This document shows positions 1 through 25,000 of a DNA stretch of 64,000 nt, piece after piece. Source of the stretch: Macrostomum lignano (taxonomy: Eukaryota); the NCBI GenBank assembly GCA_002269645.1, contig NIVC01001798.1, positions 1-64,000 of the forward strand, given 5' to 3'. Position 1 is the first letter of the stretch; each line of letters starts with the position of its first letter. The notes beneath the pieces were generated by a model that was not told the DNA's origin, made no database searches, and saw only the letters and a list, made by a program, of their open reading frames with translations. The position numbers were made by a program, and so were the translations under genes.

Positions 1-273
1 CCCCTAAAAGAAACTGGCGCCCTCCTAAAAGAAACTGGCGCCGCCCCCTAAAAGAAACTGGCGGCCCCCCCCTAAAAGAAACTGGCGCCCCCCCCTTAAA
101 GAAACTGGCGCCCCCCCTCTAAAAGAAACTGGCGCCCCCCCCTCTAAAAGAAACTGGGCCCCCCCTAAAAGAAACTGGCGCCCCTCCCTAAAAGAAACTG
201 GCGCCCCCTATAAGAAGCTGGCGCCCCCTAACTCAAGCCCCCCCCCCAATCAAAATTCCTGGCTACGCCCCTG
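1..273. mobile_element. Right end of a hAT-like non-autonomous element filled with a ~22-27-bp tandem repeat (CCCCCTAAAAGAAACTGGCG)
   Basis: Ends in AAATTCCTGGCTACGCCCCTG (253-273), identical to the right terminus of the complete MITE at 2979-3160. The left end lies outside the window. Confidence 0.7.
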
Positions 274-665
274 AAAATGAGGCGGTGGGTTGAGGGAGGC
301 TTGTTGCTGTGCAGTAATGAGCTCTGCGGAGAGCGGAATCGCTAGATAAAATGAGGTGGTGGGTAGAGGTAGGCTTGTGTATGTACACTGATGAACTCTG
401 CGGAGTCGGAATCGCTGGATAAAATGGGGTGGTGGGTAGAGGTAGGCTTGTGTATGTACACTGATGAACTCTGCGGAGTCGGAATCGCTGGATAAAATGA
501 GGTGGTGGGTAGAGGTAGGCTTGTGTATGTACACTGATGAACTCTGCGGAGTCGGAATCGCTGGATAAAATGGGGTGGTGGGTAGAGGTAGGCTTGTGTA
601 TGTACACTGATGAACTCTGCGGAGTGGGAATCGCTGGATAAAATGGGGTGGTGAGTAGAGGGAGG
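274..665. repeat. 73-bp tandem repeat, about 5 copies
   Basis: ATGAACTCTGCGGAG recurs at 391, 464 and 537 (period 73). Confidence 0.9.
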
Positions 666-1664
666 CTTGTTGGTGTTCTCATTGCTCTCAATAAAATTGG
701 CTTATTTTTGTGTTGTATGTTGTTTTAAAAATGAAATGGCAATCTATGATTTACTCAGATCATCGTTTTACTTGATTTTTATATATGATGCAACTCAAGT
801 TTTCTTATTTGCTCTCAGTAATCGCATCTTGTCAATCTACAGCGTGAAGCTTATCCCGCGCTTGGAATGAAAATTGGAAGATAATTAAGCATCATAATTA
901 TCGTAATTAAGCATCGTAAAGTACTCTTATTGCTTGTTATTATAATAAATCTCGATTGTTGTAGACTGTATAGCTACGAGCATAAGTTAAATGTCCAAAA
1001 TACGCTCGTAAACTTTCATATTCATTAAAATCTAATTGACTACTTCCGATGTTGATGATAAGTATTTTTCTTTACTTTATGGTCTTACCTTATAATAATT
1101 GATTACACCTGCCCTAATTGGCAGATGTGCAACCGACAGCTCAGCCGCAGCTATCGCGCGGCGCATCTGAAGGCTGCGTACGGCTGTTCAGTCCAACTTT
1201 AGTATATTTCTATTGGTACTTGTGTATATGGTTCTATTCTAATAATTTTAGTCAATCATTGACACATGGTCAAGCCCAAGGACAACTTAATAACTCAGGA
1301 CCGGAAACGAGCCAATTCATGGCGAAAAAAGTATGAGGCTCTTGAAGCATTGTTCTATGGCCCATCCGAATGCGCATGCTTTCAGTTGCCAATGTATACT
1401 TGTATCATATTTGACTTTTTGATAGGCAGTCAGAAGGCGGGTGCAGGGTCGGTTTTCTTAAATGTTGAATAGTTTTATTACATAAAGTAACCGTCGTGAA
1501 AATGCACAATGGGAAAGCTGTACATGCAGCACATTTATAAGAAAACTCGAGAAAAATTTACGATTCTTTCTTCATCTGAACTACAAACAGAGAGGAAAAT
1601 AACAGTCACAGAATTGGACAAGAGCTGACCATGATAAATAGTGAAGTGTTTGCTCCAGGTTCGC

Positions 1665-4510
1665 TCACTGTCCACTCAGCTTCAGTATTTTTCTATCGTG
1701 CACTTTATCCGGTGAAGGAGCGCTCTTTGCTCCTCGTTGAACATAACCATTGAAGAAACAGTTGGTGAGGCGCACGCAGCATCCCAGAACATCTGCTTCA
1801 GGGAAGTAAAACTCGACAACGGCAGCAAACAATTTGCGCACTCGCAAAGCACATAACGGTGATCGCAGCGAAATGAAGCATCCGAAACAAAGGCAAGCAA
1901 AATTGAACAGCCACTTTGGCGGGTGCTTCAACTTTCCCCGGGAAATCATTTCAGTGAATTCACCGAGTGCGGTGTTTAAATTTTCGGCAGGATCATCACC
2001 GGCAATTTTCTCCTTAAACGTTATGTAGCCTGAAATGTTATTATTATGCCTCAGTTGTCCTTCGCCTCAGCAATCGTTATTTCCATCCAAGTTCAAGTAC
2101 GAGCTAACACAAATGCATGCCTTACCTGCAATATCATAAACAGATGCCTTTTCGGCCATTGATAGGCTCTCAGCTTTGACGTAGCAGTCATCGAGCGTCG
2201 AAAGTTCTTCGTCTGAAAGGGGCGTGTCGCAGCAAAGTCCTTTGTTGTGCACGAATCCATCCAGCTCTAACACTGTGTAGAGTTTCATTCGTCGGAGTCG
2301 AGCGCTGAGAAGAACTTGCTCTACTGAGATAAAGTAATTGCCTCCGCTCATTTGGCGATAAACACCAAATTCTGCTTCCAGAGGATCACTGTGCAACTCC
2401 GCTATGAGAATGTACGTTGCACCAGATTCGCAGAGCAGTCGTTCGCATAGTTCTATGATTGCATGAATAGTGTAAGCTAATGACCTCTTCGTCTCTGACG
2501 TCAGAGATTGGTGTCTTGTTCTTCCCTTTCCACTGCGCATCTCCTCAATCGATTCGCAAAGCGCGCGCAGGAACTTGATGTTTGGATCTTGAACTGAATA
2601 GACAGCCCGTCTGTCTGGGTCATTAAGTCTAACATGAAGATGCGGGTTCTTGCAGTTCACAATTTTCCAGAATTTTGAAATAACGTCAATGAATGCAGCT
2701 GTTCCATTCTTCCCGTCGCATTTTAGGGTGGCAGCAACATTGTCGCAGAAAACTTGAAGAGCTAAATTGACTTTAGTCTTTTGGACATTCGTTGGGAAAC
2801 ACGCTTCGTATGTAATGCCTGTACGCTTAACAATGTGATTTGCTTCAGATTTATACAGTTCTACAATGTGTGACCACTTAGCCGTGACGACTGTTGTAGA
2901 CTTGGGCAAACGAATGGTTAGCATTCCATCAGACTCAGACTGCCAATTGTTCCGAATTGACTTCAGAAGGTGTACAACCAGTGGCGTAGGGAGGGGGGGA
3001 TCAGGGGGGATGTATCCCCCCGAAGAGCCTGACCAAAACTTTTTTGTTGCACTTTTTCGCTATACATGCTACCATGTGAGCACTTTTACCTTGGTGTATC
3101 CCCCCGTAGGAAATTCACCTTGGTGTATCCCCCCGTAGGAAATTCCTGGCTACGCCCCTGTGTACAACATCATGGAGCAAAAAGAAAGTAGACTCCTGTG
3201 ATTCAGATTTGCCGATCCAAGGTTTTGTCTGTTGAGCAGCAAACATCGAGAAGCACTTTCTGTTTGTGGGATGGTTGTCACACACAAGCGCTACATGTTG
3301 ATTGACGAGTTGAATGCACTTTCGAAGCTGATGGTACAAAAAGTCGGCGGAAAGAAGAAAAATCGATATCAGCCTTGACAAATGCGACCTTTACGATCTC
3401 GTGTGCATCATTTTCAGTGCCAATCTCTCCTAGACCAGCCAACTGAGTGCGTAATGTGCGTTGGCAAAGGAAGGAGCGTCTGTGCATGCGCGTATGCAGA
3501 ACTGCTAATCAGGTAAAGCAAAGCAGATTGGCGCATAGTGGCAATGTCGTATCGTCGATTGTTTGGGTGCGTTGTGGCGAACTCGAGTAGCTTCAGGATG
3601 AATGTAACTGATGTGTCCGGTACAACTCCATCGTGGTTAAAGGCAATAGAAAGGTTCTTAGATAATGCCCTCACCTCACTTTCGACGTCCACTGTAGAGT
3701 TTTTACAACGATTTATGATAGCTTCAAGTTGCGACCAATACTTTAATGTTGGTTGACATCCAAGCAGATCTCGAACCGCAACTGGTGAGTGTAACCGAAA
3801 GCATCGCACGGAATAGTTTGGTGAAACGAAAACCCGCAGAACCATTTCGGCATTGGCGCTTAACGAGAAGATAAACACCTCCTCTTGAACAATGGTAACA
3901 ATAAGCTGATGTGCTTTGATGACGTCTGAACAGTGAATGGATGCTCGGAATTCAGTCCACGATGGCAGCGTGTCCCGCTCTCGAAATTCTACTAGTTCAT
4001 CTTGGAAAAGGCATCGTTCGGACAGCAGCACGCCCCTTTCCTCAGCCTGTCGACTGGCACGCACTGCAATATCCAAGCACGCTTCTTAGTGTTTCGTTTC
4101 GACCCTATTTGATGGAGTGCAAATATTTGAGCAGTAGAACTTCACAAACCTTGTGTTTGAACGAGGCAGGACTGCGGGACTCCGTCGAAAACTGATGGTG
4201 GATGTAGCGGCCTTTCATTTCTTCCCTTTTTTATCATTGGTGCATCTTGAGGCCAGTGCTTAGCACACACGCCCATGTAGTCTGTCACGGTCTAAACAAC
4301 AACAAAATTGCTAATGAATTAATGTGGCCAGGCTAAATCTGATTCACAAAGCACATTTGAAGAAAGTCTTACCGTCAGTTGATTAGGCAGAGACAGTCGC
4401 CAAGCCTCTCGTTCAGTTGCATCTTTAGGAAACAAAAATACTGCAACATTCCGATCACGGTTACTATTGTAGTTTGCACAACAGAAAATGACGCTGCATT
4501 TTCTCGGCAT
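1665..4510 (-). pseudogene. Spliced THAP-domain P-type (THAP9-like) transposase, disrupted
   Basis: Exon 4510-4373 (MPRKCSVIFCCANY..FLFPKD..W) splices to 4291 (..VCAKHW..PSVF), completing the C2CH THAP finger. Further motifs: LPLP..TLR, VCDNHPTNRKCF, HDVVH/LLKSIRNNW, SDPLEAEFGVYRQMSGG, DIAG/YI across intron 2125-2030, SRGKLKHP. Frameshifts near 4078, 3460 and 3350, plus a MITE insertion. Confidence 0.85.
2979..3160. mobile_element. hAT-like MITE (182 bp) inserted in the P transposase
   Basis: TIRs CAGTGGCGTAG / CTACGCCCCTG (10/11 match). Exact 8-bp TSD TGTACAAC at 2971-2978 and 3161-3168. Internal ~30-bp direct duplication. Confidence 0.9.
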
Positions 4511-4832
4511 GATATTTAGTTTCAGCAAGAATAAAAGTTCTCTCTCTCAATTGCAAGTGCATGCGAAGAACTCGATCAATTTTCAGCTCAGATTTCTTCG
4601 CTTTCGTAGCACACGGATGGGCCATAGAACAATGCTTTTAAACGAGCCTCATACTTGTTTCGCCATGAATTGGCTCGTTTCCGGTCCTGAGTTATTAAGT
4701 TGTCCTTGGTCAAGCCTTCAAAAATGGCTCTCACTATCGGTTGTCTATGGCCAAAAAGCCATCTTTCACCAATAACGCGACCGTGCGGTAAATTCCAGCC
4801 ACTGTGTGGCAAATTCCCGCACGAATTCAAAC

Positions 4833-4973
4833 CAAGGACTACTTAAAAACTCAGGACGTTACACTCGCGAATGATAGAAATTCTAGAAACGGGCGCTTGC
4901 TTTAGCTGTGTCTATGGCAATGAAGCCTTTTCACTAACATTCTTTCATATCCTGAGTTGTTAAGTAGTCCTTG
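4833..4973. mobile_element. P-type MITE (141 bp)
   Basis: 24-bp TIRs CAAGGACTACTTAA(A/C)AACTCAGGA, related to the TIR of the large element. Exact 8-bp TSD ATTCAAAC at 4825-4832 and 4974-4981. Confidence 0.92.
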
Positions 4974-5176
4974 ATTCAAACTTTGAAATTTATTTCAAAC
5001 AAATCTTAAACAATAAAACAAGCACAGACAGTGGTCAGATAACAAAACAAAGCAGTTTTTATTGCAAAAACTAGTGCACCAGGATGATACTTAGTGTAAC
5101 AAACCTGACAGACGTGGCGTCGTTCAGATCTTGCTAAATGTGCAGTTACTGACTGGTCTGTGGAAATTGAAAACAA

Positions 5177-5819
5177 CTAAGTTGGATATGCAGACACAAA
5201 CTTCCGAAAGAGGCCCAAGTAGAGAATTTCTTGTTGCTTTGTCCCTTCAACACAGTTGGTCTTCTCGAATTCATGCAAATCCTGGTCCAACTCCGTCAGT
5301 GCAGCTTCTTCCTGGCCAGGTCCATCAATCTCCCATAACAATTCGAAGAGTCTGTTGCTTGCCTCGTCGAGATAATCGTCATCGTCATCACCAAACACCC
5401 CGTTGCTCATCAACCAGCGCCATCACTCCATGCCAGTCCAAAGTCTGGTCTATCTCCGTAGCCGTAAGACCCGAAATCATTTCATCTCGAAATTTAGAGA
5501 GGTCAATAAGTCTAGCGGTTCGAGACATTTTCGGCTCCTGTCTTTCTTGTCTAGTCTCGTCTTTCTGGTCCAACTCAAACTTTAAGTCACCGCTCTTATA
5601 ATCTCTTAGTTTGTGGTAAAACTCCAGCTTCGTGTGAAAACCCTCGATGTCTATGGCTATCCATCTATGTCTATGGCTATCCATATATGTCTATGGCTAT
5701 CCATCTATGTCTATGGCTATCCATCTATGTCTATGGCTATCCATCTATGTCTATGGCTATCCATCTATGTCTATGGCTAAAATCAGGAGATCGAAGGCTT
5801 CGCCCATAAATCTAGGAAT
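5177..5819 (-). pseudogene. Disrupted coding fragment of an unknown acidic helical protein
   Basis: Protein-like frame IPRFMGEAFDLLILAIDI / EGFHTKLEFYHKLRDY..DEQR is interrupted by a 120-bp tandem expansion. After a frameshift near 5400 it continues as GDDDDDYLDEASNRLFELLWEID..AYPT*. Confidence 0.45.
5647..5778. repeat. 20-bp tandem repeat (ATGTCTATGGCTATCCATCT) x6
   Basis: ATGTCTATGGCT at 5647, 5667, 5687, 5707, 5727, 5747 and 5767. Confidence 0.95.
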
Positions 5820-6339
5820 CTACCGATTGGTTCCTTCATGCGTAAATAGGCTAGTCCTGGCAAGAGTGCGCGTCTAAGCGATAGATAAATCTACCATTGT
5901 CTGCCTTTAAAACGATGGACAAAATCATTAACACACAAACTGGCTAAAGGTTTCTGCTTCATATTACCCGGCGCACTATAGAGTACATGTACACCTGACA
6001 GAGCTTGGGTTAGGCATGGTAACTCAGCTGGGGTGATTGAGGGCAAATTCTTTGCACTACAGACCTGACACGCAGGCTTTCTCTCCGTTGACTGTCAGAA
6101 TTGAATGGCTGTGTTTGAATTTTGGTATTGTACGCTCAACTCAAAGCAGCCGGTGAGACTGAGTACAATGCTATCTAACATTGTATTGGGACGATCGGTT
6201 GAATCTATAAATGCAAAAACTGTCCGGGAATTAGCTTTGTGATTGTTACAACTCTGCCTACCAACCCTAGCTATCCAGAACTATAGGTACCATCAATGCA
6301 GAGTGCAATGTTGACATACATCTACGAGAAACTACTGGC

Positions 6340-6625
6340 AAATTGTCAAATTCATCTAAACCGGAAGAGTCTTCTACATGCACTGCTGCTGGAGGTACAA
6401 TAGCTGCATTACTGCTATTGTACCTCTGGTTTGGTGACTACAATTAACTCGAGTAGCATGCGATGCACTCTCCAGAGATTCTTTGCCGCAGGTGGCTCAG
6501 TCAAACCAGACGCCCGCGGAGCTTACGGCACCTGTCAGCAATCAGGAAAATCCACCTCGTTGAGTTTGAGCCGCTGGTGCCGTCGAATTTATACCTAAAC
6601 TCTGAAATCTATCCGGCATCACATC
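6340..6625 (+). pseudogene. Decayed partial duplicate of the 5' part of the neighbouring PHM gene
   Basis: CCAGACGCCCG..GGAGCTTAC, GTCAGCAATCAGG, GAGTTTGAGCCGCTGGTGCC and CATCACAT match 7860-8010. NRKSLL..LLLLYLW echoes NRISLL..LLLAHLW. Contains stops, indels and an internal deletion. Confidence 0.8.
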
Positions 6626-6860
6626 CCGCCCTCCGCAGGGCCCTGCTTCTACTCAACCTCAAGGACATCAGGACGGTAACCATGGCCCTCTCGGATCATG
6701 GCTGTTTTGCCAGGCATCGCTACCTAATTGAGCATTGAGAATTCTGGCTCTCCTGCGTTGAGAATGCGGAATGTCTTGCCTTTACTCAGGAGAGTCACCT
6801 ACCTCGGCCCAAAACCGGACCTTCCGACGTTTTTAAGCCCGAGAATCTCTGCCAGCTCGT
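6626..6860 (+). mobile_element. Probable decayed 3' fragment of a non-LTR retrotransposon ORF2 (I/LOA/R1-like C-terminal region)
   Basis: LRRALLLLNLKDIRTVTMALSDHGCFARHRYLI followed by ECL...RVTYLG resembles the LTGHG-x-F-xx-H ... CPA..R..LG region around the CCHC knuckle. Judged by motif memory only; broken by stops and frameshifts. Confidence 0.35.
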
Positions 6861-7624
6861 CCGCAACCAAAGGGCTACCAGGCGAACGACCATCCACATC
6901 CTGGACTCTCCGGAGGGGGCAGTCAGAGCGCCGCGCGGGCACCGGCACCACCGGATCTCCGTCCCTGCGTAACACCGCAGCACTAGCCTCGACGCCTTCC
7001 CGCTGTATCCGGAACCCCCTGCAGCTGAGTCAAGTACATGTAAGTCTCTTGACGTGCGTAAGAAGTCTCGCGTACTCGAGTAGTCGAGTTTAAGCTGTTC
7101 ATAGTCGTTAAATTGGTAAGCTGTTGTACGTAACATGCACGAAAAATTGTAGCTTGGTAACTTTGTGTAAAGCAATCGAAATGCATCAACTACTAACATA
7201 TATTTCAACTACTCGTATTAGCAGTCTCGATAAGAAAATGTAAACCCTTTCATCAGTGTGCATTCCTCCTTTACATAACCCACCCCACGCCACTGCCACC
7301 CCACTTCACTTTGAGAGAGGTTTATTTTGGGGGCGTCCGATACAGGGTTGATGCTCTTGCAGACTCAAACAAAGCATTTTGGCTCCATCTCCCCAGAAGC
7401 GCTAAAATAGACCAAGTCAATAGAAATGTACAGTGGCAAGCATTAGACCTACTGCTTTTGATGCAGCGCCAATTCCTAGGGCTGCTATTTAATGGCAAGC
7501 GCGAATTTTGCTCTGAAGGGGTGCACGTACACTGAGGGATGAGATTATTAGGAGTACTAGCCTGCAAAATGAATCGTGCATGAAAGCTGTTTGCATCTAG
7601 GTTCTGCTCTGAGAAGACAAATAT

Positions 7625-8991
7625 ATGTCTGTAAAAGACAGCTCTATGGAGCGAACAAACGTCGAGGTCAGCAAGATGAAGTCCATCTGCCGAAGACTAT
7701 TTTGCATGCGCTTCTCGTCCAGTGGGCGACTGCAGTTCAACAGGATCAGTCTGTTGGCTCTGGTTGCGTATCTTCTGCTTGTGCAACTACTCTTGGCGCA
7801 CCTTTGGCGAAGCACTTATAAGATACACTCCATGGAGATTCGCTTGCCGCAGGCGGCTCTGTCGAGCCAGACGCCCGGAGCTTACTTGTGCACCGCTATC
7901 AGCCTCCGAGACCCGAGGAACGCGTCAGCAATCAGGCCAATCTACATCGTCGAGTTCGAGCCGCTGGTGCCACCGAATCCAACAAACTCCGAGATCCATG
8001 TGCATCACATGCTACTCGCCGAATGCAACGAGCTACCAGAAGGTGTCGGCGTCAATGGGCACGGCTGGTGGAACTGCGGTCTGGGACACCACAAAGACAG
8101 CGCCAAATCCGCGAACAGCAGCAAAGAGATGTGCTCGGTACGGCAGCGGTACCTGTTCGCCTATTCGAACAGTGCGGAAGCGTTCCGGCTACCGCGGAAG
8201 GTCGCGATGCCCGTGGGAGACTCTCGTTTCTACGGCGGAGCGCACCTGGTGCTGCAGGTACGAAGATCTACATATTTTGTGTGTCTCATAATAAGTACAA
8301 GCAAATGTCTCGTACTGACAACTAATTATGCGTAACTGACAACCAGGTGCACTACTCTAGTGGAAACCAACGGTTGCACGTCCATCCAAATCAGCATCAC
8401 TCCCCTGCAGTTGGAGACCGCAGGCCCGGTCTCCGTCTCCGCTACCTGAATGAGACGGGAAATCATTACCGAGTGGCCGGAGTCCACCTGTCTTCAACGT
8501 CGATCAGACCCGACGTCCGCTCTCGACACACCACCGGCTGTGAGTACACTGGCGAACTGCCGATAAGACCATTTGGTCTTCGGGTGCACACTCACTCGCT
8601 GGGCAGGCTGGTCTCCGTGTACAGAGTGCGTCGGCCCCGGCTGCCCCAGGACCCGATGGTTTGGCACCTCATCGGCCAGGCCGACCCGCGCCAACCGCAG
8701 GCCTACTATTCCGCAAATGCGAGCAGCGACCTGACAGTGAAGCCAGGCGATCTCATTGCGACAGCGTGCGCCACTACAGGCGGCAGAGGTGGCAGGTCCG
8801 CCCCAGTTGAGACGTGCAACGCCTGGCTCATTTTCTGGTTTGAGCAGTTGGATGCATTGTCGAAAGTGACTGGGCCGGATGGCCACGAGGGCAAAGTGGA
8901 TCTGCGACAAGACTGCATCAGTAGTGGCTCGGCGTTGAGCCTCTGGTCTGATGCGCCGAAATGGGTTGAGAAGCAGGCTTTTTTGGTGTAA
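7625..8991 (+). CDS. PHM: Peptidylglycine alpha-hydroxylating monooxygenase (monofunctional PHM, copper type II monooxygenase), 2 exons, up to 425 aa
   Basis: Exons 7625-8257 and 8347-8991 (phase 0, joining HLVLQ/VHY). N-terminal hydrophobic stretch, AYLC, VHHMLL, RVHTHSLG, PQAYY, GDLIATAC, ETCN; disulfide cysteines conserved. No PAL domain follows. Start codon uncertain. Confidence 0.9.
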
Positions 8992-9374
8992 TCAGTACTT
9001 ATAGTAATCACTTTTGGTGACTGTTTTATAAACTATTGAATGGAATTAAAGTTTGAATTAATGTTTGCTCATTACATTCGCAAGAAGTTTCAACAGTGAT
9101 AATCGCTTGCTAATTCTGGTTAAAAAACTTTTGTGCATCTTCAAGCTGTTAAAAGCTTATTTCATTCTTTAAATACGAGTATTCCTCCCAATTACACCCA
9201 TGATGATTATTTTAGTTTTGGCTAGAAATATTTACACGTTTGTATTGTATTCCTTTATATTCCAGCTTTTACTAGAATATGCAGGTGCTGCTGTCCTTTG
9301 CTTCTTCAGTAACGCTTAAATAATTGGGTTTTTGTTCTACGAGTTTGTATTTTACTTCAATGTGCAATTTTTAC

Positions 9375-9705
9375 GATGCTGTCAGATCCCCATAGAATGT
9401 CTGTAGTGACTGCCAAATCCCATAGGATGTCTGTAGTGATCGTCAGATTTTATGATTTCTGTCGTGACCGTCAGATCCCATAGAATGTCTGTACATGTAG
9501 TGACCGTCGGATCCCATATGATGTCTGTAGTGATTTTCAGATCCCATAGAATGTCTGTACATGTAGTGACCGTCGGATCCCATATGATGTCTGTAGTGAT
9601 TTTCAGATCCCATAGAATGTCTGTAGTGACTGTCAGATCCCATATAATGTCTGTAGTGACTGTCAGATCCCATAGAATATCTAGTGACTGTCAGATCCCC
9701 ATAGT
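9375..9705. repeat. ~30-36-bp minisatellite (CAGATCCCATAGAATGTCTGTAGTGACTGT)
   Basis: About 10 degenerate copies visible. Confidence 0.9.
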
Positions 9706-11055
9706 CACTACGCTGATTGACCAATTGTGAAGTCTCAATTGTGCTGAGCGATTGCTCAGACGCATCATGCACTCTACATGTTAGCTCTTACTCACCATTA
9801 TGGTAGCTAACTATTAGAATTACGTACTGTAATTATAATTTCCCTTGCCTTTCCTTTCTTTAACCTACACTATGCAACTGTGTGCTCCAAGCAGTGCTAG
9901 AATGTCTAATAGTGTGCGTGTGCATCGGATTTCCTTTCCCTGTATCCCATCTGCCTATGCAATGCTGAGACCGACTTCACCTGGGCGAGTGTACATTCGA
10001 TATTTGTAGACTAGGGTATAGAGACAGACCACTGAGTTCTAAAGTTAACTAGCTATCTGGATTGGAAAGCTAGAGCAACCTCGTGTATAAGTGAAATTTT
10101 TTAAACGTGGTGGAAGTGGAAGTAGTGGCATAGCCATATAGCCTCGGGGGATCATAGAGGTCATATGGGGGTCATGACGCGCCCCCAAATAGCTAACGAT
10201 GAAAATTTTTAATCTTAATTAATTCTTTAATCGGCGCTATGGGCGCTGATTTAGCGCCACTGACTAGATGTTTCTGCCTCTCAAAAAAATGTTTCGCTCC
10301 TAAAGAAGCTTTAAAGATTGAAATACAAGTAGCCGTGCCCGTGATCGATATCTTTCATTTTTTAGTCATTCAATGAACTTTTTACGAACTTCCCGCAAAC
10401 AAGCGGTAGATGTAGAGGACAATTGACAAGGCATTAATAGCGCGTGTCTATTGATAAGTTCCGCTGAACCTGCGGGGTAAGTCCATGTCCTGTCCCGCCT
10501 GTTATTCTTCCTTTGGCGAGGCGAAGCGTTTAACAACTGTCAATGGGGTTGTTTGTTAACTTGTTTCCTTTTTCTAATTCTAGTCTAGATTTCGTTAAGT
10601 CTAGAACTCCGTGACTCACCGCCCCGCCCCAAACCCCCCTTTACCACCCACCACCCCAAGCACCCACCACCCCAAGTACCCACCACCCTGAACACCCACC
10701 ACCCCATACCCTCGTGCCGCACATGACCAACTCTCCCCTCTCCTCGCTTGCGCGTAGAAAATAGCTTGCTCCTGCAGATGCTCTAGCTTCTATGTAGCAT
10801 AGAACGAGAACCCAGCCAGCGCCCACTCCCTTCCCGATTGCCCTCTAGCTGTATATATTAACTGTACATTGTACAATTAATTCCTGCAAACTCACTTTTT
10901 AGTTAAGCAAGAATAAATATTCTCCCACGCTGGGCTTTTACAGTCCTTAACTGTTTAACTGTGCTCCAGCCCTAAACAAAAAGCGACAAGCTAAGATAAG
11001 ATAAGAGATAATTAGAGCCACTTGCAACTCCCGTAACACAAATTAGCTTCCCCAA

Positions 11056-14000
11056 ATGGACTCTACTCAGTCTACTGCAGTCACAACGTCCAATAGCACT
11101 AGCAGCCTAGTGTACATCAGTCGTCGAATTCTAGACGACATCAAGCACAGTCGCAATTCCGACATTAAACGACACGCTATCTATCCGGAGGAGCGAGCTC
11201 TAACCCTGCCAATTGAAGAGGCGATTATCTACGCTATCCAGATGATTAATAGCGATGCTGTTCATCGATTGATTGAGCTGTGTGGTCGGACTAGGATTAA
11301 CTTCCGTTATACTGGTGAGTGACGCTTGCCGGAAAATTCCGGATAATCAAAAGATAGGCAAAAAATAGAATGTCGCCATGACGCAAAACGAAAACAGATA
11401 AATTGATGTCAGTGGCCAGCGGTGGCGCCTGACCAAAACAGGTGTCAGCGTGGTGTTAAAAATGGGCATCAATGTACGTGGCGTTAAACTGCAAACGTGC
11501 GTTGAAGGCACCAGCCACGAGGACTCGAAACCATTCCCTTCCTTATCCATTCTCCCAGACTCCCGAGGTCGACGCTTCATCCACCACGCCGCCGAGTCGG
11601 GCAGCGCAACCCTCATCAGAGTGTTCCTGACCAGCGGCCCGCTGAACGTGCAGGACGCCGACGGCTGGACGCCGCTGCTCCGAGCAGCTGATCGAGGCCA
11701 CACTCAAGTAATCGAAATTCTCAGCCAAGAGTCCTCGGTGAACATGCCGAAGACTCCGCGACCGGAGATCATGTCCGCGCTACACCTGGCAGTCCGGGGG
11801 CGCCATTGCGACTGCGTTGACGCGCTGCTGGCGCGGGGCGCCTGTCCCGACATGCTGGCTGGCGGAGGCGAGACGCCGCTGCACCTGGCCGTGGAGTCCG
11901 GCTGCCTGCACTGCGCCCTGGCGGTTCTGGAGCGCGGAGCCGACCCCCGCTGCGTGGACGTCTACGGGCAGACGCCGCTGCACCTGGCCGCTAAGAGGGA
12001 CAACGTGACCATGGCCGATTGTCTGCTGAATGCCGGAGCCGAGCCCTGCGCCAGGGACACCAACGGAAAGTCGCCGCTGCATCAGGTGAGCGTGTTCTAC
12101 AAATTGGCGCAAGTCTTCTTCTAGATTTAGAGGCCTCCATCCTTGAAATAGCCTCCGTTAGTGACAGAATGTCAGGTAAATCGCTGACAGAATCGCTAAC
12201 CAGTGTTCAAAACCTTGACTTACCAGTGACCGAAAATCTCTCGTCAGTGGCAAAAGACGTCTAGCTTCTAAGCCAGTGCCAGAACCCCAGAACCTCGTAC
12301 CAGTGCCAGCATTTTATCTAAAAGTGCTAGAACCTCGTATTATACATGTACATTTACCTTGGCCGGAACCTCAGTCACTGAACAAGCCCTCATCAATCTC
12401 ATTCATTTCCCCAATCCGCAGGCCATCTTAAACGATCGCTGGGTCATGGCTGACTACCTGCTCGCACAACCTGGCGTCGATGTCAACTCCGCCGATCATC
12501 AGGGCGTCAGACCGCTGCATCTGGTCATCATTCGTTGCGCCGGCAGCTCCGGGATGCTCTTGGCCAACGCTGGTCAGGCAGCGTCGGCATCAGCTGCAAC
12601 CTCGACAGCTGCAGCTCCGACGATCGAAGCTGCTCGCATTGAACTGCTTGAGAAGCTGCTGGCTCAGGGCGCTGATGTGAGTTCAAGGGTGATCGATAAT
12701 GGAAAGTGTTAGATCGGCGTTGAAGACATTCGCAGCTGATTTTATTCGACTACAAAACCGCCCAATATGACGCCAAAACGCAAAACTACTCAATATACGA
12801 CTACCACTGAAAAACACATTTAGCTACATGAACGCTCGTACACAGAAAACAGTAACGCAATACCTTTCTCAAACGACGTGGTTTCTAGGGCAAAGGGTGA
12901 CTCATGGTCTCTGAATCACTTCCTCCCTTCCCCTCTGTCTGCATGAGACTACTTAAGCTTAATATTTCGTGTACTCCAAAAGGGCGTCGCCGCTCAAGCA
13001 CAGCCCAATCCTCTAGTGCTTGCTACCTTCAGATTCAGGAGTGAGCGAGTGGGCAACCAACTGCCCGTCAACTTAACTGAATCATTGATTTGACGCTCTG
13101 CGAATCCAGAAATCAATATCGCTGATTGGAATTTCTTAGCCATAATATAGTCTGCACGGGGGACAGGGGGTAGAGTGTGTGTCTGAATTTCGCGTTAAAG
13201 TATCGGGGTTCGATTCCACATTAATTTGGGAATTGTGCACTCAAATTAACCAGCTGGCTTGTCGTGAGATTCACGACCCCTAAGGCACAATCGAGAGTTT
13301 ACATGCCTGACGATCAGAAATTCAAGGCCTCTGGAGCCTGTACAACCCTGTGTATGTTCCAGGCTCGATTCCTATAGTGCAGTCACGTTAAGTTGGGTCT
13401 AACTTGGAATCTCGGCTTGGCTCTGCTCGTGCCATTAACGCCCTAAGGAACAGTAAAGTCTACATGCCTAACGATATATCACGTTGGGCCGCTATAAACT
13501 CCTGTGTGTGGCTGTGCTTATGATTGCGTACGTATCCTTGCGCTTATGTGCCTACTCAGGGGAGTCGGCGGAAGTGGCAGTAATGCCTCTCGCCGGTTGT
13601 GTGACAATTTCGCATAAAGTATACCAGAGTGCACATAGCCCCTGCTTCTAATAGAAAAATTACATTCTGTGGGATTACATGCTCAACTGGTGCATGACTG
13701 TTAGTTCGCTCTTCGATTTGAAAGCAGGCGTCTTCTGCACCTGTACCTCTTCTGTCAACCTAATCAGGTAAACGCGCTGACAGACGAGGCTGGCGAGTCG
13801 CCGCTCTCCTTGGCGGTGACCTCCGGTAGCGAGGCTCTGGTCCGCCTTCTACTAGCCAACGGTGCCAGCGTCTTATCCGCTGACAAGAACGGCGCGAGCC
13901 CGCTGCACCGAGCGAACCTCTTGACCACTTCGTCTAGGAACTCGATCCTGTCCGCGCTGATTGAGCACGGCTGCGATGTGAACTCCTGCGACAAATTTGG

Positions 14001-16096
14001 TTATTCACCAATTAGTAAATGCGTCTTCCAGCTCATGGTCGATCGGATAACGCAAGCCGACTGCTTCGAGGGACTGCGGCTCATGGTGCGGGCTGGGGCC
14101 ACGCTGGGTCCCCTGCGGCGGCCTCAAGAGCAGCAGCAGCAGATGCAGCAGGTACTTACTTTGCACCTTGCTTTGTACCAGCAATATTTGATTAGATACT
14201 AGTAGATTGTTTCGGAAGAGTGCTTGGGGTAGAGTAGCCAGCCAAATTGTCTCGGTAGAGTGTCTGAGTAGAGTAGCTGAGTAGAGTGTCTAAGTCTGAA
14301 GTAGAGTAGTCTGAGTAGAGTGTCTGAGTAGAGTAGCTGAGGAGAGTGTCTGAGTAGAGTAGAGCTGAGCTGAGTAGAGTGTCTGAGTAGTAGAGTAGCT
14401 GAGGAGAGTGTCTGAGTAGAGTAGCTGATTAGAGTGTGTGAGTAGAGTGTCTGAGTAGAGTAGCTGAGAAGAGTAGCTGAGGAGAGTGTCTGAGTAGAGT
14501 AGCTGAGAAGAGTAGCTGAGGAGAGTGTCTGAGTAGAGTAGCTGATTAGAGTGTCTGAGTAGAGTGTCTGAGTAGAGTAGCTGATTAGAGTAGCTGAGTA
14601 GAATGTCTGAGTAGAGTGTCTGAGTAGAGTAGCTGAGAAGAGTAACTGAGTAGTGTGTCTGAGCAGAGCAGCTCAGCAGAGCGGTGTGTCGCTGTTACCA
14701 GGCTGCTACTCAATCCGCCCCATCCCGCACATCGATCCCGCCCAGCAGCAGCCCGCTCGCCAGCTGAACTCGCCCATCGTGTTCCTGGCGTGGCGCGGCC
14801 ACTGGCCCGGCGTGATGTTCCTAATCCGGTGCGGCTGGCGCCTTCAAGACGACGCCAATCTGCTCCCGGTGCTCACCGCGTCCGCCGGCTCGCTGCTGCC
14901 GCCCGACCCCGTCAGGGAGCGGCTGGCCCGCTGGGTGGAGGCCGCGTGGCTGCGCCGGCCGGCTACTCTGGCGCACCTGTGCCGCGCCTCCGTTCGGGAA
15001 CACCTGGGCGGAGTGCTGGCGGAACAGGTGAGGATCTGGGACAGGGGTGGGGTGTGACTAGGATCCGAGGTATTAGGATATATAGGATTTGGGGATCTAG
15101 GATTTCGATCTTTGATGTCGACATCTCACAAAATTCCCTAACTAAAGATTCAGTATGAACTTAACCGGCCCAGATGCGACCCCAGTATTTATAATTTGGG
15201 ATTTGGGTTTTGGCATTTGGAATATGGGATTTGGAATATAGGATTTGGGATTTGGGATCTGAGATATGGGATTTGTATTGTAGGATATGTGATTTGGGAT
15301 ATGAGATTTTAGATTGGATTCGGAATATGGGATTTGCGATTTGGGATATAAGGGATTGGGAATCCAGGAACTCGAACCCACGAGCAAGAGTCATGTGTGT
15401 TACTATGGGTTCGTACTTTAGGCTTGCCAAATACGAGATGCTGAGGATTCCGTCTTGTCACAACAATAACCGTCTTGTCACAACAATAACCGTCTTGTCA
15501 CAGCCATCCTAATGAACGGACGAGCGTATGCTCGTTCAATCCACGGGGTCTAGCGCGGCGCTCTGATGCGCCATGCGGCGCAGGCTCGATTCCAAGTTCA
15601 GTCGCATTAATTTGGGGCTAAACTGAAATCTCGGCTTGGCTCTGCTCGTGCAATTAACGGCCTTGAGGGCCAACCCCAAGGCACAGTGAAGTGTACATGC
15701 CTAACGATAAATAAATTTAGGGCCGCTGTACACTCCTGTGTGAGTGTGTGCCTGCGCGTGTGACTGCGTACGTATCCTTGCGCTTGTGTGCCTGCTCAGG
15801 GGAGTCGGCGGAATGGGCAGTATAATGCCTCTTGCCGGTTGTGCGACAATGTCGCTTAAAGCGCGCGCCAGGGTGCACACAGCCGCCTGCCAGCTCTAAC
15901 TCAAAAACAAATCCCCTCAATCCTGCCGCAGAAAATCAAGCAACTGCACCTGCCAATCAGTCTGAAATCCTACCTTCTCTACGAGCCCGAGTGTCGGGCC
16001 TTTGAGGACACCTCGATGCAGGACTTTGACGAAGACTTCAGCGACTGTGACGCCGATCCAGAAGTCGAGGCTGAAGCCGGCACGTCCAACGCTTGA
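11056..16096 (+). CDS. Ankyrin repeat and SOCS box protein (ASB family), 6 exons, ~646 aa
   Basis: Exons 11056-11314, 11559-12085, 12422-12676, 13768-14151, 14677(or 14680)-15027, 15932-16096, all GT-AG and phase-consistent. Many G-x-TPLH ankyrin repeats. SOCS box PATLAHLCRASVREHLG..EQ / KIKQLHLPISLKSYLLYE is split by the last intron. Confidence 0.88.
13320..13659 (+). mobile_element. tRNA-derived SINE copy (ASB intron 3)
   Basis: B-box GCTCGATTCC near 13363; body GGGCCGCT..ACTCCTGTGTG..CGTACGTATCCTTGCGC..CAGGGGAGTCGGCGGAA and A-rich tail shared with the other copies. A related diverged head lies just upstream (~13190-13320). Confidence 0.8.
14215..14665. repeat. Purine-rich ~13-bp repeat (GAGTAGAGTAGCT / GAGTAGAGTGTCT) filling ASB intron 4
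   Basis: Directly visible tandem array. Confidence 0.9.
15085..15365. repeat. Degenerate 7-bp repeat (GGGATTT / GGATATG)
   Basis: Directly visible low-complexity array in ASB intron 5. Confidence 0.8.
15535..15910 (+). mobile_element. tRNA-derived SINE copy (ASB intron 5)
   Basis: GGTCTAGCGCGGCGCTCT head, GCTCGATTCC B-box, full shared body. Ends ~20 bp before the last ASB exon. Confidence 0.85.
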
Positions 16097-19091: not shown

Positions 19092-22000
19092 ATTGGGGGA
19101 CAGGATTGGGCCTGTGTGTACATTGGGGGACAGGATTGGGCCGGTGTGTACATTGAGTCAGGAACGAGATTGAGTGAGAGCAAATATGGAACAAAATTTA
19201 ATGTACATGCGCGCTCGTACGCTGCATAAGTGCAATACATTGAGAGCAAAATATATGAAACTAACAATGCACATTAAAGACGGCCTCTGCCTGTAAATTA
19301 GGCGCCTGTACATTACATCAAGCTTACCCTATTTGACGTAATATAAAAGCGCACTCACATCTTTAAAGTGTCTCTCTTCGTTTAGCCGATAAGCGAGCTT
19401 AGGGCACTGGACCAACTGCCGGAACAGCCTGTATTGCAGCTCCTCAATGCGATCGCTATACTCCACAGTGATAGGCTCCGAGAACAGTTTCATCATGAAC
19501 TCCGGAAAGTTAATCCGATTGCAAATCATTCGACAGACGTCCGTCTTTTCGCAGACCATGCACATTACCTCCATTGACAGGACGCGCATAGCGCCTGGGT
19601 ATTTGTTTGGTTCGCGTATCATCTCAACGGATATGTCGATAATGTTGGGCATTTGAATGTAGCGAATAACAGTGTCGCGACTGTCTGGCATGATTTTGAG
19701 GCCCATCGACCAGAGGCCCATCATTACGTAGAGCTCGTGGTGCGTCATTTTTTTCAGCGGCGTGCGTACAATTCTTGGTATCGAGCGATGTCGAATCTAA
19801 AGATTGTTCAGTGGTGGAATGAGATTTGAATTTGAATTTGTTCTTAATCTACAAGTGGGGAAGTGGATCCCGAAATCCAATTGAAATTGAATCTGGATCC
19901 TGGGGTCACAGAAATCTGATATTTTTGCATAAATATACTTCCAACCTTCTATTCCTACCATCTCCAACTATAAAGCGTACTTTATCACTGCTATTGATTG
20001 ACTGTCTCACCAGGCCCCCGCCGCTACAGCCCCACTCCATACATTCCTACCCCTTTAACTGCATTTTATCACTGCTGTTTATCATCGACTGTTCGCCTGA
20101 CCACCCCCCTCCCCACCCGCCGCCACAGCCCCAATACATACATTCCTACCCCTTTAACTGCATTTTATCACTGCTGTTTATTATTGACTGTCTCGCCTGC
20201 CCAACCCCCCTCCCCACCCGCCGCCACAGCTCCAATACATACATTCCTACCCCTTTAACTGCATTTTATCACTGCTGTTTATTATTGACTGTCTTGCCTG
20301 CCCAACCCTCATTCCCCACCCGCCGCCACAGCCTTAATCCATACATTCCTAACCCCTTTACCTGCATTTCATTACTGCTATCACTGCTGTTTATTGGCTG
20401 TCTCGCCATCCCAACCCCCCCACCCGCCGCCACAGCCCCGATCCATACATTCCTTCCTATCCCTTCTAACTGTATTTTATCACTGCTATCTAGTAAGGAC
20501 TGGATGAGCGACGGTTATTATAATTTCTATCCAATCAATTAGAAATTTCTTATCACCAACTGACCAGCATATCAAAGCCGCCCTTCTCTTTAAATTTGGT
20601 GTACAATTCTGTGCCGCGTTTATCCGCCACAGCTTCGCCTAGACAGTGGAAAGCACCGGCAAAGAACAATTGGGGGGCGTCGAACCATTCCTGGCCGTTA
20701 AATAGGTTTAGGAGTTGCTCGGCGTCAGCGATTCGCTCCGGTGTGGGACCGAATTCTGCGTTGCAATGGAGATGTTTTGCTTTTTTCGGTTAAAATGATG
20801 ACTACGGGGTAGTTGATTGATAAGATCTGGTGTTTGCTGGTCTGGGCAGTGTGTACATTGGGACATTGGGGGTAGGGTGTTTGCTGGTCTGGGCAGTGTG
20901 TACATTGGGACATTGGGGGTAGGGTGTTTGCTGGTCTGGGCAGTGTGTATATTGGGACATTGGGGGTAGGGTGTTTGCTGGTCTGGGCAGTGTGTACATT
21001 GGAACATTGGGGGTAGGGTGTTTGCTGGTCTGGGCAGTGTGTACATTGGGGCATTGGGGGTAGGGTGTTTGCTGGTCTGGGCAGTGTGTACATTGGGGCA
21101 TTGGGGGTAGGGTGTTTGCTGGTCTGGGCAGTGTGTACATTGGGACATTGGGGGTAGGGTGTTTGCTGGTCTGGGCAGTGTGTACATTGGGACATTGGGG
21201 GTAGGGTGTTTGCTGGTCTGGGCAGTGTGTACATTTGGGGTAGGGTGGGTGTTTGCTGGTCTGGGCAGTGTGTACATTGGGGGTAGGGTGGGTGTTTGCT
21301 GGTCTGGGTAGTGTGTACATTGGGGGTAGGGTGGGTGTTTGCTGGTCTGGGTAGTGTGTACATTGGGGGTAGGGTGGGTGTTTGCTGGTCTGGGCAGTGT
21401 GTACATTGGGGGTAGGGTGGGTGTTTGCTGGTCTGGGCAGTGTGTACATTGGGGGTAGGGTGGGTGTTTGTTGACCGGGGCTCTGACTCACCATCGGTCT
21501 TATTGAATTGGCTCTCGTATTGCTCTAAAAAGTGCCTACATGCGGCATCGAACAGCTGGCCGGGGTTATCGTGCAGCCTACGCATCTCTAGCGCAGTGGC
21601 CGCGGCTCGCGCCCAACGACGAGTCTCAGCAGCGCGACCGCTGTTGAGCACCTGGTTAACCTGTAAAAAGCAGGTAGGGTGAAGAAGGTTAAAAATAAAT
21701 TGACAGTGTAACAATTACGGTTAAGGCGTTAAGAATTGAAAGCAGATTTATCAGAAAAAGTATTAAAATAAGAAGTATTAAAGCTTTAAGGAAGTTTTAA
21801 ATACGACAATCAGGCCCTTGAAAAACTTTATTTTAGTTCTAGATCGGTGAAAAAGCAAACCCTGAAACTATGAAAGAATCAGGCCCTGAAACTATGGAAG
21901 AATCAGGCCCTGAAACTATGGAAGAATCAGGCCCTGAAACTATGGAAGAATCAGGCCCTGAAACTATGGAAGAATCAGGCCCTGAAACTATGGAAGAATC

Positions 22001-25000
22001 AGGCCCTGAAACTATGGAAGAATCAGGCCCTGAAACTATCGAAGAATCAGGTCCTGAAACTATGAAAGAATCAGGCCCTGAAACTATGGAAGAATCAGGC
22101 CCTGAAACTATGGAAGGATCAGGCCCTGAAACTATGAAAGAATCAGGTCCTGAAACTATGGAAGAATCAGGCCCTGAAACTATGGAAGAATCAGGTTCTG
22201 AAACTATGAAAGAATCAGGTCCTGAAACTATCGAAGAATCAGGCCCTGAAACTTTGGAAGAATCAGGCCCTGAAACTATGGAAGAATCAGGCCCTGAAAC
22301 TATGGAAGAATCAGGCCCTGAAACTATGGAAGAATCAGGCCCTGAAACTATGAAAGAATCAGGTCCTGAAACTATCGAAGAATCAGGCCCTGAAACTTTG
22401 GAAGAATCAGGCCCTGAAACTATGGAAGAATCAGGCCCTGAAACTATGGAAGAATCAGGCCCTGAAACTATGAAAGAATCAGGTCCTGAAACTATGGAAG
22501 AATCAGGCCCTGAAACTATGGAAGAATCAGGCCCTGAAACTATGAAAGAATCAGGTCCTGAAACTATCGAAGAATCAGGCCCTGAAACTATGGAAGAATC
22601 AGGCCCTGAAACTATGGAAGAATCAGGCCCTGAAACTATGGAAGAATCAGGTCCTGAAACAATGAAAAAGTCAGGCCCTAGAACTATGGAAGAATCAGGC
22701 CCTAGAACTATGGAAGAATCAGGCCCTAGAACTATGGAAGAATCAGGCCCTAGAACTATGGAAGAATCAGGCCCTGAAACTATGGAAGAATCAGGCCCTG
22801 AAACTATGGAAGAATCAGGTCCTGAAACAATGAAAAAGTCAGGCCCTGAAACTATGGAAGAATCAGGCCCTGAAACTATGGAAGAATCAGGCCCTGAAAC
22901 TATGGAAGAATCAGGCCCTGAAACTATGGAAGAATCAGGTCCTGAAACTATGGAGGAATCAGGTCCTGAAACTATGGAAGAATCAGGCCCTGAAACTATG
23001 GAAGAACCAGGCCCTGAAACTATGGAAGAATCAGGCCCTGAAACTATGGAAGAATCAGGTCCTGAAACAATGAAAAAGTCAGGCCCTAGAACTATGGAAG
23101 AATCAGGCCCTAGAACTATGGAAGAATCAGGCCCTAGAACTATGGAAGAATCAGGCCCTAGAACTATGGAAGAATCAGGCCCTGAAACTATGGAAGAATC
23201 AGGCCCTGAAACTATGGAAGAATCAGGTCCTGAAACAATGAAAAAGTCAGGCCCTAGAACTATGGAAGAATCAGGCCCTAGAACTATGGAAGAATCAGGT
23301 CCTGAAACAATGAAAAAGTCAGGCCCTAGAACTATGGAAGAATCAGGCCCTGAAACTATGGAAGAATTAGTACCTGAAAGGCTGAAACTATGGAGGAATC
23401 AGTACCTGAAACTATGGAAGAATCAGGCCCTGAAACTATGGAAAAATTAGGTCCTGAAACAATGAAAAAGTCAGGCCCTAGAACTATGGAAGAATTAGTA
23501 CCTGAAAGGCTGAAACTATGGAGGAATCAGTACCTGAAACTATGGAAGAATCAGGCCCTGAAACTATGGAAGAATCAGGTCCTGAAACAATGAAAAAGTC
23601 AGGCCCTAGAACTATGGAAGAATCAGGTCCTGAAACTATGGAAGAATCAGGTCCTGAAACTATGGAAGAATTAGTACCTGAAAGGCTGAAACTATGGAGG
23701 AATCAGTACCTGAAACTATGGAAGAATCAGGCCCTGAAACTATGGAAGAATTAGTACCTGAAAGGCTGAAACTATGGAAGAATCAGGCCCTGAAACTATG
23801 GAAGAATTAGTACCTGAAAGGCTGAAACTATGGAAGAATCAGGCCCTGAAACTATGGAAGAATTAGTACCTGAAAGGCTGAAACTATGGAAGAATCAGGC
23901 CCTGAAACTATGGAAGAATCAGGCCCTGAAACTATGGAAGAATTAGTACCTGAAAGGCTGAAACTATGGAAGAATCAGGCCCTGAAACTATGGAAGAATC
24001 AGGCCCTGAAACTATGGAAGAATCAGGCCCTGAAGCTATGAAAATCTAGCTGAAACTAATAAAGCAGTGTAGACCCTAATAAACACAATCCAATTGAAGC
24101 ATTAAATCGTAACCATACACGTTTAAGTCCAACTAACCATTTCGCCGATCGCGTTGCACTCGCTTAGTATCTCGTCGGTTTGCGGCAAGTCCATCAGCAG
24201 CATAGACATGCAGCCAAACATGCGGCCCATGGCCAACGTACCCTCGGGCGACACCTCGTCTAACAGGTTCTCAATGGCAGTGCGGCAAGCCTCGACTAAT
24301 CCAGGCTGACGCATTAAAGCCTCTCGAATGCAATAGTGCTGGCATAGACTGAAATCAATTTAGCTTTACTATTAATGACCTGACAACACTCCTTTGACAT
24401 CTTGAGTGCTAAGCCACCTATCTGCCTCTCACTCTTAAACCACCCCTAAGCATTTTCATGTTTTTAAAATTCAACTCTTTCGAGAAGGTCAATTTCCAGA
24501 TTCTATAGACCCGCAAAGGTCAAACAATCGAATTTGTCGATGAGAGAAGTTTTGAGCTAATAAAAAAAACGATCCTGTTTCAGAGGTTGGATTTCATTTG
24601 CATTTGTTGTGCAAAACATTAATAAGCTACTATTCCAGAAAAACGAATACTTCTTCGCGTCTACCGGTAGATTTCAAGCCTAAATCATTCTCTCTCAGTC
24701 CAACAATCGCTACGGTAGCTATACTCACCGGTAAGCAGCGTTGCAAAACTCCCCAAACGATTTCGGATGCTCACTTCCGTTAACAAGACCCTCTCGAATG
24801 GCTTTGGCAATGTAGTCAATTTTCTTAGAGTCCTGATCAATCACGCGAACGTAGAACCTTGGACACAGCGCAATGGTGGCCACGAGTTTGTAGGCCTCGG
24901 CACGGGCCAGATCGGATTCGCCGCCAGTTCTTAGCATGAGATGCATATTGGCTCGAATTTTGTTGCTACCAAATATGCCGTAGTCGCTATCGAACAATGC

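Follow-up and report, generated by a model that had tools for sequence, protein, structure and literature searches.

Gene model and family assignment

The window analyzed here, 64,000 nucleotides from the flatworm Macrostomum lignano (assembly GCA_002269645.1, contig NIVC01001798.1, positions 1 to 64,000), carries at positions 7625..8991 of the forward (+) strand a gene for a protein related to the copper monooxygenase PHM. The gene was reconstructed from two long open reading frames (ORFs) that lie in different frames (7625..8335 and 8347..8991) and are joined by removal of an 89-nucleotide GT...AG intron with 36% GC (8258..8346); excision of this intron restores both the frame and the QVHY motif. 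Exon 1 (7625..8257) encodes residues 1-211, which comprise an N-terminal extension, a hydrophobic segment, and the part of the CuH domain that reaches Gln211. Exon 2 (8347..8991), for residues 212-425, completes the CuH domain (His213), carries the CuM domain, and closes with a TAA stop codon. The spliced coding sequence (CDS) is 1278 nucleotides long and its product of 425 residues is identical (100% identity over 100% of the length) to PAA47899.1, the M. lignano hypothetical protein BOX15_Mlig031046g2, which UniRef labels 'Peptidylglycine monooxygenase'. A second contig of the same assembly, NIVC01004296.1, carries the DNA of the gene base-for-base unchanged.

The CDS has a GC content of 58%, and 68.5% at third codon positions (GC3), with 39% GC in the downstream flank. 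A candidate polyadenylation signal, identified as a pattern match, is present 54 nucleotides past the stop codon (ATTAAA, 9045..9050, +). The GenBank annotation of the assembly was produced from a genome-guided RNA-seq transcript assembly (PMC5730564), so that transcripts support the GenBank model, its intron included. The possibility of alternative splicing or of a hidden canonical exon was considered and rejected, as tblastn searches with six canonical PHMs against the whole 64-kb window returned the two known exons only.

Pfam detects PF01082 at residues 71-218 (50.9 bits; gathering score 30) and PF03712 at residues 260-379 (51.8 bits; gathering score 23). These two domains, in this N-to-C order, place the protein in the copper type II ascorbate-dependent monooxygenase superfamily. 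The protein is not a bifunctional PAM, as Pfam shows the two PHM domains only and no C-terminal PAL domain; the ORF ends at residue 425, 46 residues past the C-terminal domain match. The top HMMER matches are all PHM or PAM proteins, and the closest solved structures by sequence are all rat PHM/PAM chains (E ~1e-18). A DBH/MOXD1/TBH-type protein was ruled out by the lack of a DOMON match in Pfam and by a weaker structural match to DBH, nine orders of magnitude below that to PHM.

Copper ligands, cysteines and predicted fold

Residue equivalences were taken from the HMMER alignment to rat PHM. For comparison with the wider family, a HMMER scan of 1.84 billion representatives yielded 283 family matches at E <= 0.001, and 277 proteins were collected and re-aligned. 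The VHHM motif supplies His127 (8003..8005, +) and His128 (8006..8008, +), equivalent to the CuH ligands His107 and His108 of rat PHM; among the 232 other PHM domains with coverage at these positions, His occupies the first in 226 and the second in 231. The third CuH ligand, rat His172, corresponds to His213 (8350..8352, +) in the QVHY motif that spans the exon junction, and Gln211 (rat Gln170), the last codon of exon 1, is also kept. In the CuM domain, an RVHTH motif (8581..8595, +) contains Arg290 (8581..8583), His292 (8587..8589) and His294 (8593..8595). These correspond to rat Arg240, which binds the substrate carboxylate, and to the CuM ligands His242 and His244. The protein thus keeps five of the six copper ligands, namely the full CuH set and two of the three CuM ligands. 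The eight cysteines that occur family-wide are all present as well (C89, C134, C151, C170, C276, C352, C368, and C401) and, by analogy with rat PHM, would form four disulfide pairs.

An AlphaFold2 model computed from a 37-sequence alignment has a mean predicted local distance difference test score (pLDDT) of 80 and a predicted TM score (pTM) of 0.80, with low confidence confined to the first 35 residues and to loops that are lineage-specific. The best Foldseek matches to this model are 29 rat PHM chains (E 1e-21 to 1e-18; target TM 0.66-0.77), followed by human DBH (E 1e-12). The predicted structure has the two-domain beta-sandwich fold of PHM.

An earlier note on this DNA, made from its letters alone, had described an intact ORF with the VHHM, QVHY, and HTH motifs, the substrate-binding Arg, the disulfide cysteines, and an otherwise preserved fold. 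The motifs and the Arg were all located in the 425-residue spliced product, and the statement on cysteines holds for the eight family-wide residues. The claim of a preserved fold is supported by the AlphaFold2 model with its Foldseek match to rat PHM; five of the six ligands and all conserved cysteines are preserved as well.

Upstream of the CuH domain is a hydrophobic helix at residues 41-61 (ISLLALVAYLLLVQLLLAHLW; 7745..7807, +) that AlphaFold2 also models as a helix at residues 40-60 and that is preceded by a basic stretch. From its sequence, the helix is probably a signal anchor or an uncleaved signal peptide, either of which would fit a lumenal, disulfide-bonded protein. In-frame Met codons at residues 8, 18, and 28 could be the real start.

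The CuM methionine motif is altered

The third CuM ligand is changed. The alignment places ETCN of the M. lignano protein on EMCN of rat PHM, within an ETCNAW motif at 8809..8826 (+), such that the CuM thioether ligand Met314 corresponds to Thr367, encoded by ACG at 8812..8814. Thr is found here in both M. lignano copies of the protein, the second of which is described below. Trp371 aligns on Tyr318, in a column that is Tyr in 245 of 249 other PHM domains. Among the substrate-binding residues, the equivalents of Arg240 and Asn316 (Asn369) are kept, while that of Tyr318 is replaced. Cys352 and Cys368 (8767..8817, +), the counterparts of the rat Cys293-Cys315 disulfide pair, enclose a loop of 15 residues (ATTGGRGGRSAPVET) compared to 21 in rat PHM, which amounts to a six-residue deletion. 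Across the 277 family proteins the loop measures 20-21 residues in 228 of 238 occurrences of the motif, and a length of 15 was found only in the PHM-like protein and its near-identical copy. The Met-to-Thr replacement at an ACG codon, the change of the following Tyr to Trp, and a loop of 15 residues against about 21 in rat PHM had each been read from the sequence in the earlier note, and the alignment to rat PHM bears them out.

We then asked how these changes are distributed over 70 alignment columns, each conserved at a level of at least 80% across 35 canonical PHMs. Within the DEMCNFYxMY motif, six of nine conserved columns are changed (D to V, M to T, F to A, Y to W, M to I, and Y to F), compared to 16 of the 61 conserved columns elsewhere (Fisher one-sided p = 0.023). 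Together with the unique loop deletion, this enrichment agrees with the earlier view that several active-site changes occur jointly and not in isolation.

A substitute sulfur ligand at CuM was sought and rejected. The CuM domain (residues 230-425) contains one methionine, Met315, and has no unpaired cysteine, all four of its Cys residues being at conserved disulfide positions. Met315 is located in the turn between predicted strands 297-306 and 316-323, a hairpin that starts just after His294, and this turn is at the far end from His292 and His294. In the model Met315 should therefore be far from the copper site, and no replacement sulfur ligand is apparent in the CuM domain.

Rarity of the variant

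A second M. lignano sequence, A0A1I8HU36 (UniRef, 90% cluster), was compared as a protein and is either a copy or an allele. It differs from the PHM-like protein at seven residues (positions 13, 92, 161, 163, 188, 333, and 398) and shares ETCNAW. Since a distinct copy or allele has the same motif, the Thr change is not a sequencing error. The earlier note had kept a T>C error as an open option for the Met codon; this source of Thr367 is effectively excluded by A0A1I8HU36 and by the multiple changes in the motif. More broadly, a sequencing or assembly error, or RNA editing, with a true protein that contains Met, is a negligible prospect. ACG and ATG do differ by a single base, and the window and the NCBI contig may share reads. 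However, the equivalents of Asp312, Phe/Leu317, Tyr318, and Met320-Tyr321 are also changed, the loop is shortened, no alternative canonical exon exists in the window, and C-to-U editing would be needed to restore AUG.

Among the other PHM domains that cover the Met314 column, 246 of 249 have Met. In no other collected protein does Thr replace the Met alongside all five His ligands, a combination limited to the two M. lignano sequences; the sole other match with five His and no Met, P0053, has Lys in this column. The nearest relative in the HMMER scan is a Nematostella PAM with 37% identity, and the other relatives that were looked up are canonical PHM or PAM proteins of an annelid, an aphid, cnidarians, tunicates, a sponge, and the planarian Dugesia japonica. 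A word-indexed protein search returned the PHM-like protein itself only. A profile query (A1) for orthologues and paralogues was swamped and gave 5 matches, and a second profile, aimed at the canonical M. lignano PHM (A2: P0008, P0020, P0023, and P0027, guessed to be flatworm), gave matches whose named proteins were PHMs of mites and other arthropods, of nematodes, and of tardigrades; none came from a flatworm.

Constraint and decay

The PHM-like protein has diverged strongly. Over 295 core columns its mean identity to the 35 canonical PHMs is 30.5%, compared to 41.2% for the canonical proteins among themselves (per-sequence means of 31.9-45.8%). Its identity to planarian PHM is 28.9%, while planarian PHM averages 40.8% to other animals. 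Based on these low core identities, the protein forms the longest branch in the alignment and is not an orthologue of the known flatworm PHM. With an overall identity near 30% it nevertheless retains 48 of the 70 highly conserved columns, and for all the length of its branch neither the ORF nor the GT-AG intron is disrupted. In a neutral simulation of the CDS that included substitutions only, ORFs stayed open in 10% of cases at 0.05 substitutions per site, in 1.3% at 0.1, and in 0.2% at 0.15. The intact ORF on so long a branch, the simulation, the high GC3, and the RNA-seq-based gene model make long-term simple decay unlikely.

What unconstrained decay looks like at this locus is illustrated by a partial exon 1 copy that lies in the same orientation as the gene, about 1 kb upstream of it (6400..6624, +). 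The copy corresponds to approximately residues 52-129 of the gene and contains in-frame stops and a destroyed His-His motif. In tblastn this copy is 38% identical with stops, and blastn aligns nucleotides 201-386 of the gene with window positions 6467-6624 at 79-82% identity (~150 nucleotides). Weak further resemblances are present beyond 6400-6624 (...CFARHRYL..., and ...LQLSQVH followed by gtaag at ~7040). They suggest that a whole pseudo-exon 1, reaching ~7040, is possibly present.

The earlier note had preferred a functional explanation of the motif changes 'rather than simple decay'. This stands in part: the intact ORF, the simulation, and GC3 make a long decay unlikely, but selection may have been relaxed recently, given how heavily the genome is duplicated.

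Loss of the methionine ligand and probable loss of activity

The role of Met314, whose thioether binds CuM weakly, in PHM, DBH, and tyramine beta-monooxygenase (TBM) has long been a question. In PHM and related enzymes the Met sulfur serves as a ligand of CuM when the copper is Cu(I), and reviews still call this residue critical but elusive (PMC2988203; PMC12164859). The PHM variants M314I, M314H, M314D, and M314C have activity undetectable in spent medium, and among purified ligand variants, including M314H, none exceeds ~5% activity (PMC2988203; PMC12164859). M314I still binds Cu at the M site, where water takes the position of the thioether, while CuH is disturbed; in TBM, the variants M471H, M471D, and M471C of the homologous Met471 are inactive or nearly so (PMC2988203; PMC12164859). 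This record agrees with the earlier statement that loss of Met314 essentially abolishes activity (PMC2988203; PMC12164859). We found no report of a tested Thr substitution at Met314 or Met471 in the literature on these variants. The hydroxyl group of Thr is a poor ligand for Cu(I), and that of Thr367 would be expected to behave likewise in the PHM-like protein.

By analogy with the engineered variants, normal PHM activity has probably been lost. The best reading of the site is that canonical hydroxylation is gone, which leaves a pseudoenzyme or an enzyme with altered chemistry. An active enzyme of the latter kind would use a CuM formed by His292, His294, and water or the Thr hydroxyl to activate O2 or H2O2, with other kinetics or another substrate, in a pocket reshaped by Trp371 and the shortened loop. 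This proposal gains from the retention of the entire CuH electron-donor site together with Gln211, Arg290, and Asn369, which would be needless in a pure binding protein, and from the clustering of changes at the substrate/CuM pocket instead of protein-wide. The engineered proteins can also be read in its favour, as M314I binds M-site copper and M314H and TBM M471C retain a little activity (PMC2988203; PMC12164859). We nonetheless consider it improbable, given that every tested substitution of Met314 or Met471 cuts activity at least ~20-fold or abolishes it (PMC2988203; PMC12164859), that Met is so nearly universal in the natural PHM domains sampled, and that the CuM domain offers no replacement sulfur donor. 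We likewise hold it unlikely that the protein is either a binuclear non-coupled copper monooxygenase without the CuM Met (His2 plus water or Thr-OH) that has altered chemistry or substrate, or a pseudoenzyme kept by selection that binds copper or peptides and thereby modulates the amidation of neuropeptides.

Proposed role of the PHM-like protein

The interpretation that we find somewhat favoured by the evidence is that the gene encodes a fast-evolving, lineage-specific, structurally intact, and transcribed PHM paralogue of M. lignano, most likely a pseudoenzyme with a non-canonical role. Such a protein would enter the secretory pathway via its N-terminal hydrophobic segment and fold with its disulfides. 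Copper would still be bound at CuH and probably at CuM, there as His2 plus water in the manner of M314I. Cu(I)-O2 at CuM would be neither stabilized nor activated, and as a consequence peptidylglycine hydroxylation would be lost or nearly lost. Because Arg290 and Asn369 are kept, binding of the C-terminal carboxylate of peptides is perhaps retained, and the non-canonical role might be, for example, the binding of glycine-extended peptides or of copper.

Several observations weigh against a retained role of this kind. No orthologue of the Thr variant was found (15 billion proteins; closest relative 37% identical). None of the seven differences between the two M. lignano copies falls in a conserved column, where ~1.1 would be expected, and this deficit is not significant. 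NCBI and UniRef are the sole recorded sources of PAA47899.1, and the lack of a transcript-assembly (Logan) source may reflect low expression of the gene; a full-text search for expression data on Mlig031046, extended to the supplementary files of two RNA-seq papers on M. lignano, gave no result. Cluster look-ups, which gave cnidarian, annelid, tunicate, sponge, and planarian PHMs, returned no canonical PHM of M. lignano, and if the species has no canonical Met-containing PHM the PHM-like protein would have to be active. Finally, the M. lignano DV1 genome contains 180 Mb of duplicated non-repetitive blocks at >=95% identity (PMC5730564), and duplication on this scale favours relaxed selection on spare copies.

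The last point is also the starting point for the reading of the gene as a redundant duplicate that is drifting towards a pseudogene, still open and transcribed but under no selection for function. It is compatible with the DV1 duplications (PMC5730564), the decayed partial copy 1 kb upstream, the longest branch in the family, the failure to detect an orthologue or a transcript-assembly source, and the existence of PHM-like proteins with multiple ligand losses in other animals (XP_077988554.1, XP_033126806.1, and P0128). We regard this drift as a real possibility, although a less probable one than a pseudoenzyme with a role. An intact ORF and GT-AG intron at such high divergence are difficult to reconcile with it, since only 1.3% of simulated ORFs were open at 0.1 substitutions per site even with indels uncounted. 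The retention of five of the six ligands, eight Cys, and 48 of 70 conserved columns also speaks against drift, as do the strongly elevated GC3 and a model that folds confidently in prediction.

The protein adds a new natural variant to an enzyme family that is already well known. If it is a Met-free monooxygenase or a selected pseudoenzyme, it provides a natural test of the requirement for Met314, whereas if it is a decaying duplicate the finding is ordinary; its interest would rise sharply if Thr367 is conserved under purifying selection or if any copper-dependent activity exists. The UniProt name 'Peptidylglycine monooxygenase' probably overstates its activity, and the protein should not be counted as an amidating enzyme of M. 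lignano.

Surroundings of the gene in the window

Window positions 1-13741 align with positions 2371-16094 of NIVC01004296.1 at 99.7% identity, and these 13.7 kb contain 6 mismatches and 33 gap openings. Past 13.7 kb the alignment fragments in repeats, and the end of this 51-kb contig falls near window position 14.8 kb. At 9379-9704, ~390 nucleotides past the stop codon of the gene, a 30/66-bp tandem repeat array gives rise to spurious ORFs at 9443-9772 (-) and 9452-9730 (+). Minisatellites are dense in the window (34590-39453, 21860-24040, 28842-30215, 30976-32023, 20829-21453, 14248-14681, 1-228, and 274-670), with examples such as a 24-bp unit present in 202 copies over 4.9 kb and another of 24 bp in 88 copies. 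Many long ORFs in the window are repeat artefacts, for instance the 526-residue ORF at 21870-23450.

Three further ORFs match known domains. The ORF at 2067-2924 (-), of 285 residues, matches the TNP-like GTP-binding insertion domain PF21788 (E 2.7e-8) and is probably a fragment of a P-element/THAP9-type transposase. An ORF or exon at 11450-12124 (+), ~2.5 kb downstream of the PHM-like gene, encodes ankyrin repeats (PF00023, E 3e-31), and the NCBI list for the overlapping contig has no called gene there. The ORF or exon at 49545-50450 (-) matches Ion_trans (PF00520, E 1e-60), with a weak polycystin-channel match, and is probably part of a cation channel gene.

Comparison with known systems

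The M. lignano protein shares its Pfam domains, the beta-sandwich fold, and the five His ligands with the rat PHM core (1PHM, 1OPM, and 1SDW) and with invertebrate PHMs such as that of Dugesia japonica (BAD98846.1). The equivalents of Arg240, Asn316, Gln170, and the four conserved disulfide pairs of canonical PHMs are also present. Like other flatworm and insect PHMs it is monofunctional and has no PAL domain, and it has a putative N-terminal targeting segment of hydrophobic character, as they do. It differs from canonical PHMs in the replacements of Met314 by Thr, Tyr318 by Trp, and Asp312 by Val, in changes to the next Phe, Met, and Tyr, in a 15-residue loop where they have 20-21 residues, and in a 40-residue extension before the hydrophobic segment. 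The DBH/MOXD1/TBM branch has the same two copper domains and ligand set, but the M. lignano protein is without DOMON and its Foldseek match to DBH (E 1e-12) is weaker than that to PHM (E 1e-21).

Three other Met-less relatives have lost more of the site. In XP_077988554.1 of Glandiceps talaboti, H242R accompanies M314T and the segment that bears His172 is missing. XP_033126806.1 of Anneissia japonica has lost both CuM His and the Met (HTH to YSN, and EMC to DEC), and in P0128, an 834-residue PAM-like protein, the expected residue is missing from every one of the six ligand positions. These three proteins thus lack two or more ligands, and some of their models are fragmentary, whereas the M. 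lignano protein is full length and keeps five of the six. The natural PHM-domain proteins with non-canonical copper ligands seen in other animals (P0086, P0128, P0132, P0016/P0274, P0143, and P0095) include these three and XP_065187707.1 of Sycon ciliatum, which has H107D. Judging by their sequences, ligand loss seems to recur in animal PHM duplicates; no paper that discusses ligand-deficient PHM paralogues was found in the literature.

Close parallels are the engineered proteins, PHM M314I (1YI9), M314H, and the other M314 variants, and TBM M471H/D/C, in which, as in the M. lignano protein, the thioether ligand is lost and all His are kept. A natural PHM with only this ligand swapped, accompanied by loop changes, could serve as a natural scaffold for asking about the role of Met314, or represent the first clear PHM-derived pseudoenzyme. 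The engineered variants are single laboratory substitutions, whereas the change in M. lignano is natural, has Thr as the replacement, and comes with a remodelled motif and loop.

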